A DNA stretch of 63,992 nucleotides, from positions 35,129,433-35,193,424 of the forward strand of contig NC_068993.1 in NCBI RefSeq assembly GCF_001194135.2. The letters run 5' to 3'. The position numbers and the translations under genes are program-made. This DNA is from Octopus bimaculoides. Lineage: Eukaryota. Shown in pieces: positions 16,196 through 38,688 of the stretch. The notes under the pieces are model-generated. The model was not told where the DNA came from and did not search any database. It saw only the letters and a program-made list of their open reading frames with translations. Every line of letters begins with the position of its first letter. The stretch's first letter is position 1.

Positions 16196-16346
16196 ACGTA
16201 TAGTGGAATTTTTTGGTAGCCCTATTCCGTAACCATCTTCCCCATATGTCTGCCCGACAAGTTTTAGTTGACAATTTGGATCTAATTTCGCGCGTGCATA
16301 ATCCAATATAGGGTAATCTCCGAGATATGCGTCTAACTTGCCGTCT
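16196..16346 (-). CDS. GRIN3-like: Internal exon of the GluN3-like receptor, S2 lobe: (I)DGKLDAYLGDYPILDYARAKLDPNCQLKLVGQTYGEDGYGIGLPKNSTIR
   Basis: Acceptor tatttacAG|A, donor CGT|GTGAGT; 151 nt = 1 nt + 50 codons. Contains the KLDA..D, conserved Cys and GYGIGLPxNS motifs of NMDA receptors (GluN3A as recalled: KLDAFIMD...DCKL...EGYGIGLPPNS). Confidence 0.93.
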
Positions 16347-18229
16347 CTGTAAATATATTTGTAAATAAATGAATACATAGCAAAATCACATTCGATAGAT
16401 ACTGGTAGCATTTAAAAAGACATAAAACGATAGCAAGTAGGGAAATTAAAGTATGAGACAAGTATAAGAATGTTTATTATATATAAGAAGAAATAAATAT
16501 GTTTATTAAAAATGAAACAAAATAAGATAAATCAAATAGGCATTATAATTTTAGTCAATAATTTGGTCGAATACGGAGACTATCAGTGATTGGTAACCGT
16601 GAAAACTTAAGTTATATTTTAAAGCTTTAAGTTGCTGCATAACTGCTGCCAATAAAAAAGAAACTAGAATGCATGTCTGATGTTGCAAGAAATATTTTAG
16701 AATTAATTCCAGCCATGAGACAGCTCATAGCGGTTTCATGGACGACAGAACACTTTAAATCAGAAATTTAAATCTGGTTATCCTTTATGATGTTCATTTT
16801 GATTGTTTCCACCTCATTAATTGAATATCATTAAAACCGATTTTGTTTCAATGATTTTTTATACTTCACAAGCTACTATAAACAAAGACGATGGCAGCAT
16901 GTTTACGACATCAGTAACATGGCAAATAAAACTGAAAACATTGATATTTGTAATGGTAAAGAAGGATGCTTGTATCTATTGCCATTTCTTGTTTTATAAT
17001 TACACGTTAGGAACATCAGTCTTTAGGAAGGAATATGTGAAAGATATTTATAATTAATCATCTGCAAGGAATTATTAATCATTTGTTCCGTTCATAAACA
17101 TCACACATTCAGATTATTAAAAATAACACTGAAGTCACTTAGGATCCAAAATCCTAAATCACTTTTACATGAAACATGTTTTTATAGCAATCTAAACTAA
17201 ATAAATTTATAATTATCTGGCATATGTGGTTAAGCTATCTAATTACGCTAAATACTCGTCTTCAAAACACAACCATAATTAAATACTGGTTTGAAATAAC
17301 TGTACAGCAATTTAATATTTTACGAAATGTTTTTAACACTTCTGAAATCCTATTCAAATGTTGATACATTAACAACAAGCAAAATTCATGGTTGAACATA
17401 TTTTTCTCTGTATACTGCAATCTCCCATACCTACTCTAACCTGTATAACAAAGTATTGTGAATTTTAATTAGCGAAATACCAAAGCACATTACAGTAAAC
17501 GCTTTATAGCGATATTTCATCAACAGTAAATTAGCTTCCAGCTGTATATGTGATTCCAGCCACTAATTTGTTGTATCAGAAAACATTACGAAGCGCAGCC
17601 TATGATTTATTACAACAGAAAACTGAAAACGTTTGAAACCCTGATGAATATTAACATCTTTTTTCTTTAGAAATATTCAGACATAAACCCCAATCGTTAT
17701 TTTAAAAGCATTACGAGTTTCTTCAAACAATATGACGTTTGACATGGTGTTAGATCAGTATGTTTCATCTATTATTGGCATGCTATGCACTCCATCTTAT
17801 TTCTTTCGAATTTTCATGAGTCGTATACGACCAAGACTGGAACCAAGAGGAAATACAACGTTTGTAAAATCAAAATTTACTTATAAAATACAGTGAAAAT
17901 TGTAAGGACGTACAATTCTTTGTTTGTAAGCCGGAAAAAGGCTGTAATTGATCAGGGCTTTTGAAATAGATGAAGCTTGCTTAAACAAAAAAGATATTGA
18001 AACGACAAGAAAATTTGTGTTGGGATGAGCCAATACATAGCGTAATTAGATAGCTTAACCATAAATAATGCAGTTTTTTCAGTTGTATGAACTCAAAGTC
18101 GGAAGGGGACGTGATAATATACCTGCAAAAACTTGCTAGAAAAGCAGGTAGTAATTTTACCTTGTGTTTATACTTGGTGCAAGTTTTGAAGAGTGCAGTT
18201 CAATTTTAACAGTTATTTTTTTGAAAGTT

Positions 18230-18540
18230 ATGATGGAAGTGACCAAGGGGCATATTCGGCATATTTTGCTTTATGAGTTTAATAAAAGCAACAAAGCAAC
18301 GGAAAGTGCGAGAAATATTAATGCAGTAAATGGAGATCGAACAATAAGCATAAACCAGTGTCAACGGTGGTTAATCAATACTTATTAAGCTTTATTAGGA
18401 CAATGGAATTGGTCTTGTTTGTAAAGACTAACAGATAAACGATATATTATATTTTCTTCACTGTTTACCGAAAAGACCTTCACATGGAATTGTTTTAGTG
18501 AACAATAATAAGAAGTATCTATAATATAATGTGAACCGCT
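18230..18540 (+). mobile_element. Degenerate mariner transposase remnant
   Basis: MEVTKGHIRHILLYEFNKSNKATESARNINAVNGDRTISINQCQRW is a recognisable mariner N-terminus; downstream sequence is decayed, so the 3' boundary is approximate. Confidence 0.82.
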
Positions 18541-37019: not shown

Positions 37020-37430
37020 TATACTGTTTGCATCGTACTGTGCAAAACTATGTTTGCTTGTGTGCAAACAGCTAGACAATCTCTCCGAAAATCGATTAAT
37101 AATCATACCATCGTCAAAAGTATAGACAATGATTCTTCGGAGTATAGATGGAATTTCCTGGACAGGATGTTGTATGGACTCGCATGTCTTACTATTGACC
37201 AAGTTAATTCACATTTAACCTTCTCGTCTCTCTGTTTCCAGACGAAATCAGCTAGTTATATTGAGTACCATCTATTAACCTTTTCGAAGTTGGCTATATG
37301 GTTCCTATATCGATTTTTGAAAGAATCGACAAAAATGCCGATACACACATACGGGCCTCCTCGGGTGTTCACTGTGCACTTATATATCATATTACAATTC
37401 GTAGAGAGGTTCTACAGAGGACATTTCGTT
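37020..37430 (-). mobile_element. Penelope-like element remnant (GIY-YIG endonuclease C-terminal region)
   Basis: Minus strand translates KCPL*...NMIYKCTVNT...VCIG...FKNRYRNH..NF...LADFVWK...LTWSIVRHASPY...EESLSIL / IINRFSERLSSCLH, matching the GIY-YIG tail of Penelope-like elements, with stops and a frameshift. Confidence 0.82.
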
Positions 37431-38554
37431 AAAAGTAGAATTAAAAATTATATATATATATATATATATNNNNNNNNNNNNNNNNNNNNNNNNNNNNNNN
37501 NNNNNNNNNNNNNNNNNNNNNNNNNNNNNNNNNNNNNNNNNNNNNNNNNNNNNNNNNNNNNNNNNNNNNNNNNNNNNNNNNNNNNNNNNNNNNNNNNNNN
37601 NNNNNNNNNNNNNNNNNNNNNNNNNNNNNNNNNNNNNNNNNNNNNNNNNNNNNNNNNNNNNNNNNNNNNNNNNNNNNNNNNNNNNNNNNNNNNNNNNNNN
37701 NNNNNNNNNNNNNNNNNNNNNNNNNNNNNNNNNNNNNNNNNNNNNNNNNNNNNNNNNNNNNNNNNNNNNNNNNNNNNNNNNNNNNNNNNNNNNNNNNNNN
37801 NNNNNNNNNNNNNNNNNNNNNNNNNNNNNNNNNNNNNNNNNNNNNNNNNNNNNNNNNNNNNNNNNNNNNNNNNNNNNNNNNNNNNNNNNNNNNNNNNNNN
37901 NNNNNNNNNNNNNNNNNNNNNNNNNNNNNNNNNNNNNNNNNNNNNNNNNNNNNNNNNNNNNNNNNNNNNNNNNNNNNNNNNNNNNNNNNNNNNNNNNNNN
38001 NNNNNNNNNNNNNNNNNNNNNNNNNNNNNNNNNNNNNNNNNNNNNNNNNNNNNNNNNNNNNNNNNNNNNNNNNNNNNNNNNNNNNNNNNNNNNNNNNNNN
38101 NNNNNNNNNNNNNNNNNNNNNNNNNNNNNNNNNNCACACACACACACACACACACACACACACTCATATATGTTCATACATACAAATTGATTATCTTCCT
38201 TGTGTAGTTAGTCTAATCAGTAAAATTTCTGTATTTCATATTTTCTTTAAGTTTCTAAAAGCATATTTTTTACTGTCTTAATATTGTATTGTATTGTCGC
38301 ATTGTTACTTTATTTTTAATTCTGAAGTCATTCTGTCAGATGAAATACACAACCACAAAACAAATGTCTCAGTGTGTAAAAATTTGACACTTACAAACAT
38401 ATCCAGTATTTATATTATTTAATTGTCTTAATTCGCTTGTATATAATTTTATGATTATCATATTGGCATGGAAGGGATGTCATACACGATATAATGAAAA
38501 GAATAAATACTCCACAAACACTGAAGAATTTCAGAATATTTTGGGTTTACTTAC

Positions 38555-38688
38555 ATTAACATTCGGATACCAGTATCAGATGAATTGACTAAATAATTTT
38601 GTGATGCATGGAAAATCGGCCGGTGAATACGATTAATGAAGGCTTCTACTGCACTTCCACCAAGGACACCTACTCTTGCGTCCAATAA
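38555..38688 (-). CDS. GRIN3-like: Internal exon of an NMDA-type (GluN3-like) ionotropic glutamate receptor: start of the S2 lobe, LLDARVGVLGGSAVEAFINRIHRPIFHASQNYLVNSSDTGIRML
   Basis: Read manually on the minus strand; not in the ORF track. Acceptor ttttctatttcAG|TTA, donor TTAAT|GTAAGT; 134 nt = 44 codons + 2 nt, matching the phase-2 start of the next exon. Aligns by eye to the iGluR 'RFGTVxxSSxExY...GVxxL' segment. Confidence 0.9.

Follow-up and report, generated by a model that had tools for sequence, protein, structure and literature searches.

A window of 63,992 nucleotides on contig NC_068993.1 of Octopus bimaculoides was examined for the NMDA (N-methyl-D-aspartate) receptor gene on its minus strand. 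The gene is the O. bimaculoides orthologue of GRIN3 and encodes a GluN3-class NMDA receptor subunit. The window holds three consecutive exons of it, A, B and C, which run from the S2 lobe of the ligand-binding domain (LBD) to the membrane segment M4 (residues 676-867 of 1221). The residues lining its agonist pocket differ from those of vertebrate GluN3A. Judging from the aligned sequences, octopus is not alone in this signature, which is fixed among the molluscs compared and is the general state of the protostome GluN3 compared. The best explanation, to which we assign a probability of about 0.8, is a GRIN3 orthologue with a lineage-typical pocket, most likely a GluN3-like subunit for small neutral amino acids.

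The gene itself is nothing new. It is annotated as NMDA 3A, falls in the Grin3 group of a published phylogeny, and is present in published phylogenies of the ionotropic glutamate receptors (iGluRs). What deserves notice is that every protostome GluN3 among 33 sequences lacks the three features behind the tight glycine site of vertebrate GluN3A. This raises the question of whether excitatory glycine signalling by GluN1/GluN3 is ancestral to bilaterians or is a deuterostome or vertebrate refinement.

Identity and exons of the octopus GRIN3 gene

The exons encode part of P0193, which is the NCBI protein 'glutamate receptor ionotropic, NMDA 3A isoform X2' of Octopus bimaculoides (1221 residues). 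P0193 was compared with the PDB using phmmer, which scored GluN3A at 341 bits, GluN2B at 238, GluN2A at 211 and GluN1 at 208. The 192 residues encoded by the window gave 82 bits with GluN3A and ~50 with the other NMDA classes when searched alone. P0193 has the build of an iGluR, with an amino-terminal domain, a two-lobed LBD, the segments M1-M2-M3-M4, and ASYTANLAAF in M3. Four Pfam domains were identified, PF01094, PF10613, PF00060 and PF00497 (ANF_receptor, Lig_chan-Glu_bd, Lig_chan and SBP_bac_3, respectively).

The M2 loop reads VLFGHTVSTKSPKAW in P0193 and LLFGRTVAIKPPKCW in GluN3A. At the N site both carry Gly, in contrast to the Asn of GluN1 and GluN2. The corresponding segments are VLFGHTV in octopus, LLFGRTV in GluN3A, LLNSGIG in GluN1 and VFNNSVP in GluN2A. 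The next residue, N+1, is His in most protostome GluN3 shown and in the hemichordate Ptychodera, and Arg in vertebrates and in a second Mya paralogue described below. Speculatively, His at this site could make permeation or block pH-sensitive.

Full-length relatives were recruited by a homology search with exon C alone; the spliced A+B peptide matched only genomic exon-B open reading frames (ORFs). Exact-sequence look-ups of the exon-B ORF, P0014 and P0193 returned no record. The S1-M4 region of PDB-derived GluN1, GluN2A and GluN3A plus 30 relatives was used to build a neighbour-joining tree rooted on GluN1 (386 columns, 200 bootstraps). Vertebrate GluN3A/3B, hemichordate, arthropod and lophotrochozoan sequences formed one clade that excluded GluN2A (98% bootstrap), and the mollusc orthologues were grouped at 100%. 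This placement agrees with Greer 2017 (Table 1, PMC5225553), where O. bimaculoides is listed with Grin1 and Grin3, and with Ramos-Vicente 2018 (PMC6307864), where all NMDA classes are conserved among bilaterians with the sole exception of NMDA2 in echinoderms. An earlier note, made from the letters of the window without database searches, had called the gene GluN3-like. The bit scores, the position in a tree with metazoan NMDA subunits and the Gly of the pore loop all bear this out.

The clade also contains sequences that go by other names. Its arthropod members are called variously 'NMDA 2B-like', 'NMDA 1' and 'ionotropic receptor 12'. GluN3-class sequences were found in the Diptera Condylostylus, Eupeodes, the mosquito Malaya and the sandfly Sergentomyia (P0057, P0104, P0077 and P0101), and many dipteran members are annotated merely as 'uncharacterized protein'. 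For Drosophila, just Grin1 and Grin2 are given (Greer 2017, PMC5225553).

When the full P0193 was searched against the window with tblastn, only exons A, B and C were recovered; S1, M1-M3 and the C-terminal tail fall outside the window. Motif scans upstream of 38688 for M3 (SYTANLAAF) or an S1 exon found none. Conservation in tblastx comparisons with two orthologous bivalve-like loci was confined to exons A-C. The features are as follows.

38688-38555, minus strand: exon A of the GluN3A gene, 134 nt, acceptor ...TTTCAG, donor GTAAGT; the product reads LLDARVGVLGGSAVEAF...GIRML plus 2 nt, P0193 residues 676-720
38554-16347, minus strand: intron between exons A and B, 22,208 nt, no coding exon
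16346-16196, minus strand: exon B, 151 nt, acceptor ...TTACAG, donor GTGAGT; the product is S2 lobe, DGKLDAYLGDYPILDY...GYGIGLPKNSTIR, P0193 residues 720-770
13287-12997, minus strand: exon C, acceptor CTAG, donor GTAAAT, phase 0 after exon B; the product, IPLSEKILDY...M4...MFLSQ, comprises the end of S2, a conserved Cys, M4 (HAGLFVLLTVGILLGIIVLLLEH) and the start of the C-terminal domain, P0193 residues 771-867
19498-19548, 26840-27091, 30941-31081, 36032-36061 and 37470-38134: five flagged assembly gaps, 1,139 N in all

Exon A opens the second half of the S2 lobe and encodes G-G-S-A-V-E. Its S-A-V (AGT GCA GTA, 38655-38647) lies at the N-terminus of helix F. The exon ends two bases into a codon, and the first base of exon B completes the split Ile codon. 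Exon B encodes G-D (GGA GAT, 16321-16316), the Asp of which is the ligand-amine contact. Both motifs lie on the minus strand exactly where the earlier note had put them. Exon C is an addition to that note, in which only the two motif exons figured. Joined together, the three exons comprise 576 nt in frame with no stop codon.

The scaffold is a draft rich in gaps, with 15 N runs in the window, and one might ask whether the pocket residues are an artefact of assembly or annotation, or whether the locus is a pseudogene. All five flagged gaps, however, lie inside the A-B intron, no closer than 421 nt to exon A or 3,152 nt to exon B. Because they are purely intronic, the continuity of the intron across them is immaterial for the coding sequence. 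The gaps hide no exon, as the spliced 192-residue peptide is 100% identical to P0193 residues 676-867 without an indel. The splice sites are canonical and the phases are right. The same motifs were present in the reads of a second octopus (P0001), in gastropods, in bivalves, and in a cuttlefish-like cephalopod, P0016.

P0016 has 1217 residues and shares the A|B|C junctions. Its uninterrupted 3,654-nt ORF lies on contigs of 4.6-6.2 kb that draw on at least 24 sequencing runs, and this indicates mRNA. Over the 576 nt, nonsynonymous divergence between octopus and this cephalopod (pN 0.038) was far below synonymous divergence (pS 0.87, saturated). P0016 was considered as an octopus transcript and ruled out by the saturated synonymous divergence together with a match to Acanthosepion pharaonis, in which 290/294 of its C-terminal residues were identical to a fragment from that species. 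The low pN is the mark of strong purifying selection on the GluN3A exons, which means that the agonist site is functional and not decaying. Within the limits of sequence evidence we consider an artefact or pseudogene already refuted.

The agonist pocket and its likely ligand

Octopus residues were mapped onto GluN3A by HMMER alignment. The Ala of S-A-V corresponds to S801, Val to A802, Gly to M844 and Asp to D845, with no gap beside either motif. Octopus also has Val at the position of Glu522, the partner of Met844 in lobe closure. The numbering used in the earlier note was right for GluN1 (S688/V689, W731/D732), GluN2A (S689/T690, Y730/D731) and GluN3A (S801/A802, M844/D845). Its assignments, Ala for the conserved Ser, Val for the T690 equivalent and Gly for the W/M/Y wall residue, were upheld by the alignment.

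A structural model was predicted with AlphaFold2 from a 37-sequence alignment. Its predicted local distance difference test score (pLDDT) was 82.6, and ~90 around both motifs; a model from a 7-sequence alignment (pLDDT 38.9) was set aside for it. Foldseek matched the 37-sequence model to NMDA receptor chains (E 1e-32), a match that does not separate GluN3 from GluN1 or GluN2. In the model, helix 288-296 begins at the Ala of S-A-V, so that this motif caps the helix N-terminus. G-D closes a strand just ahead of a helix. The arrangement is that of solved iGluR domains.

The contacts to the ligand backbone are kept in octopus. These are Arg (R638 in GluN3A, R523 in GluN1), Ser (S633/T518), Asp (D845/D732) and a cap Tyr (Y605/F484). 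The residues that govern selectivity and closure in GluN3A, S801, A802, M844 and E522, are replaced by A, V, G and V. In GluN3A the Ser801 hydroxyl contacts the carboxylate and D-serine, and Glu522 closes the cleft via Met844/Asp845. Since no protostome GluN3 conserves this set of four, it marks a vertebrate subgroup and not the GluN3 class.

Seven mollusc orthologues were compared, those of octopus, the cuttlefish-like cephalopod, Patella, Mizuhopecten, Solemya, Mya and Mercenaria. S-A-V, the whole block A-Y-L-G-D-Y-P-I-L, the contact Arg and Ser, and the cap Tyr were invariant in 7/7. The ligand-amine Asp was invariant in 37/37 sequences. A table of 33 sequences was compiled for the remaining positions. 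At the Ser801 position Ala was found nearly everywhere in protostome GluN3, and at the Ala802 position most protostomes had Val or Ala. The Met844 position was more variable. It was Gly in molluscs, chelicerates, one mayfly and one hoverfly, Ala in most insects, Tyr in hemichordates, and Met in vertebrate sequences only. A second lophotrochozoan group, represented by bivalves, one annelid and one nemertean and by a partial Lottia sequence in the motif alignment, had Asp there. The Glu522 position was Val in molluscs and Ala in arthropods. The pocket that the earlier note had described as atypical is therefore atypical against vertebrates only. The A/V/G combination is common to all seven mollusc orthologues, the pocket is not unusual among protostome GluN3 generally, and on these alignments the word comes from taking vertebrates as the standard for a signature that the protostome GluN3 compared have in common.

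In the second lophotrochozoan group the motif is Asp-Asp, which makes the Met844/Trp731 position acidic (P0099, P0137, P0156, P0163, P0117, P0038 and P0073). Its bivalve members formed a clade with 100% bootstrap, and the nemertean and annelid sequences share Asp-Asp. In Mizuhopecten both GluN3 paralogues lie on one 935-kb contig and in Mya both lie on one 69-Mb record.

A published rule defines a glycine-type site by Ser at the position of GluA2-653 plus a non-polar amino acid at 655, and by this rule the aligned octopus site is glycine-type. It does not resemble the glutamate-type site of NMDA2, as octopus has Ser-Ala-Val and Gly where GluN2A has G688-S689-T690 and Y730. The statement that the site fits neither class was thus too strong, and S-A-V is in addition the motif of rat GluD2. 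The idea of an enlarged pocket fared better. With Gly as the wall residue and Glu522, which partners Met844, likewise replaced, it is plausible that the cleft is remodelled and probably roomier or slacker in closing. The invariant Tyr-Pro immediately after the Asp might compensate for the lost pocket residues.

From these residues we infer that the subunit would most likely still behave as a GluN3 and co-assemble with GluN1, and that a small neutral amino acid like glycine, D-serine or alanine would gate or modulate it. Affinity would probably be lower, or size tolerance broader, than in vertebrate GluN3A, given that octopus lacks the Ser801 hydroxyl, the lid formed by Met844 and the lock formed by Glu522.

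Several points weigh against this reading. The tree, one of the supports for the class assignment, was made by a distance method, which is crude, and in it GluN1 and GluN2 had one reference each and no invertebrate member. Octopus lacks three of the GluN3A features behind tight glycine binding, the Ser801 hydroxyl, Met844 and Glu522, and its true agonist might therefore be another. Selectivity in delta iGluRs was not set by the pocket residues alone, a precedent by which no ligand can be assigned from sequence. No expression or assay of any invertebrate GluN3 was found in the literature, which leaves the choice of ligand a matter of inference.

The candidate put forward in the earlier note was D-aspartate. 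According to this proposal, loss of the bulky Trp/Met/Tyr wall admits a larger or acidic ligand and the subunit is, or is part of, a molluscan D-aspartate receptor. The octopus Gly does stand where GluN1 and GluN3A have the side chain that keeps glutamate out by steric hindrance, and the Tyr right after the Asp (G-D-Y), invariant in molluscs, could donate a hydroxyl. Moreover, a D-aspartate-gated cation current without molecular identity is described in Aplysia neurons of the buccal S cluster and is partly sensitive to NMDA-receptor antagonists. Against this, arthropods share Gly or Ala at the wall site, and they are not known for D-aspartate signalling. The Thr690 equivalent is Val, so that a distal carboxylate finds no hydroxyl there, the aligned positions show no evident additional basic residue, and the 653/655 signature is that of a glycine site. 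Aplysia itself is given Grin1 and Grin2 only (Greer 2017, PMC5225553). The proposal gained no positive support and we consider it improbable. A broader form of it, in which protostome GluN3 as a class has a remodelled cleft and an agonist that is maybe not glycine, with D-aspartate or another abundant free amino acid serving in molluscs, is doubtful.

The identity of S-A-V with the GluD2 motif brings up a pocket adapted to a neutral amino acid of greater length or an omega-amino acid, such as beta-alanine, GABA or a taurine-like compound. Invertebrate delta receptors are GABA-gated, those with near-identical pocket residues being GABA-preferring, and extra room beside the amine-binding Asp would suit a longer backbone. 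This is an argument by analogy only, however, and the octopus subunit belongs to the NMDA class and not to the delta receptors. In GluD1 an acidic upper-lobe residue has been linked to the potency of GABA. We think such a ligand very improbable.

With three closure and contact features of GluN3A lost, the subunit might instead bind no agonist and act as a structural, modulatory or constitutively active partner. Hydrophobic substitutions in iGluR LBDs can yield ligand-independent activity, as has been published. Yet more than 30 sequences from several phyla preserve Arg, Ser, Asp and the Tyr cap with little or no variation, which would be difficult to account for if no amino acid were bound. 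The Asp, whose loss gives a constitutive phenotype, is kept. A subunit without an agonist seems the least credible of these readings of the cleft, and a GluN3-like subunit for small neutral amino acids is preferred. The window brings no special evidence on the agonist of protostome GluN3.

Rest of the window

Gene density is very low, with 3 exons (576 coding nt) in 64 kb. The G+C content is 34.5%. Microsatellites of the TG/CA type and others are abundant and generate long spurious ORFs with runs of poly-Thr, Ser, Ile, Leu or Cys-Val. Nine other long ORFs of the window were scanned against Pfam and gave no match, nor did exon C alone.

Two repeated elements were observed. A tRNA-like head, GGCTTAGTGGTTAGGGC, is located at 12880-12950 on the minus strand, ~50 nt downstream of exon C, and again at 28495-28511 on the minus strand. 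These 2 matches in the window compare with 0.05 expected by chance. ARAGORN identified no tRNA in the window. The peptide 'GELAE.LA..AKCLA' recurs in ORFs of both strands, at ~2498-2683 (minus), 58320-58400 (plus) and 61039-61236 (plus). Together, the head and the peptide look like a family of short interspersed nuclear elements.

Related ORF fragments lie at 960-1361 (plus) and 59345-59581 (minus), reading …PKLRYKDTLK…W… and …RWNDTLKVVADQSWW…. They have no Pfam match and presumably resemble the C-terminal tails of ORFs of retrotransposons without long terminal repeats.

Comparison with known receptors

The closest characterized relatives are vertebrate GluN3A and GluN3B, which bind glycine and for which LBD structures (2RC7, 2RCA) and full-length structures (8USW, 9OEH) are available. 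GluN3A is the top PDB match of the octopus protein, with ~37-40% identity over the LBD and transmembrane domain. The two share the domain order, the pore loop LFG[RH]TV..K.PK.W and SYTANLAA in M3. Octopus keeps the equivalents of Arg638, Ser633, Asp845 and the Tyr605 cap, and the Ser at the 800 position. It differs in having Ala for Ser801, Val for Ala802, Gly for Met844, Val for Glu522 and Ala for Ser631. At the N+1 pore site octopus has His where GluN3A has Arg, and after the Asp it has Tyr-Pro where GluN3A has Lys-Ala.

GluN1, the glycine co-agonist subunit, is more distant (208 bits vs 341 for GluN3A). Equivalents of its Ser687, non-polar Val689, Arg523 and Asp732 are found in octopus. Unlike GluN1, octopus has Ala for Ser688, Gly for Trp731, Val for Gln405 and Ala for Pro516, and the pore N site is Gly instead of Asn.

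Rat GluD2 binds D-serine and glycine (LBD structures 2V3T/2V3U). It has the same S-A-V at the N-terminus of helix F (GTVLDSAV vs GVLGGSAV in octopus), its Ala686 being the same substitution as the octopus Ala, and the Asp is conserved. It belongs to another subfamily, however (AKDF, not NMDA), retains Trp before the Asp, and scores only ~24 bits with the window fragment.

Arthropod GluN3-like proteins of chelicerates and insects share Ser-Ala-(Ala/Val) and the Gly or Ala preceding the Asp. Unlike octopus, they have Thr-Pro or Thr-Ala next to the Asp, and their cap residue is Phe, His or Tyr. The mollusc proteins named NMDA 3A or NMDA 3A-like (Mizuhopecten, Patella, Mya, Mercenaria and Elysia) are direct orthologues, 59-67% identical to octopus in the window fragment. 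Their S-A-V and A-Y-L-G-D-Y-P-I-L are identical to those of octopus, and there is no notable difference between them.

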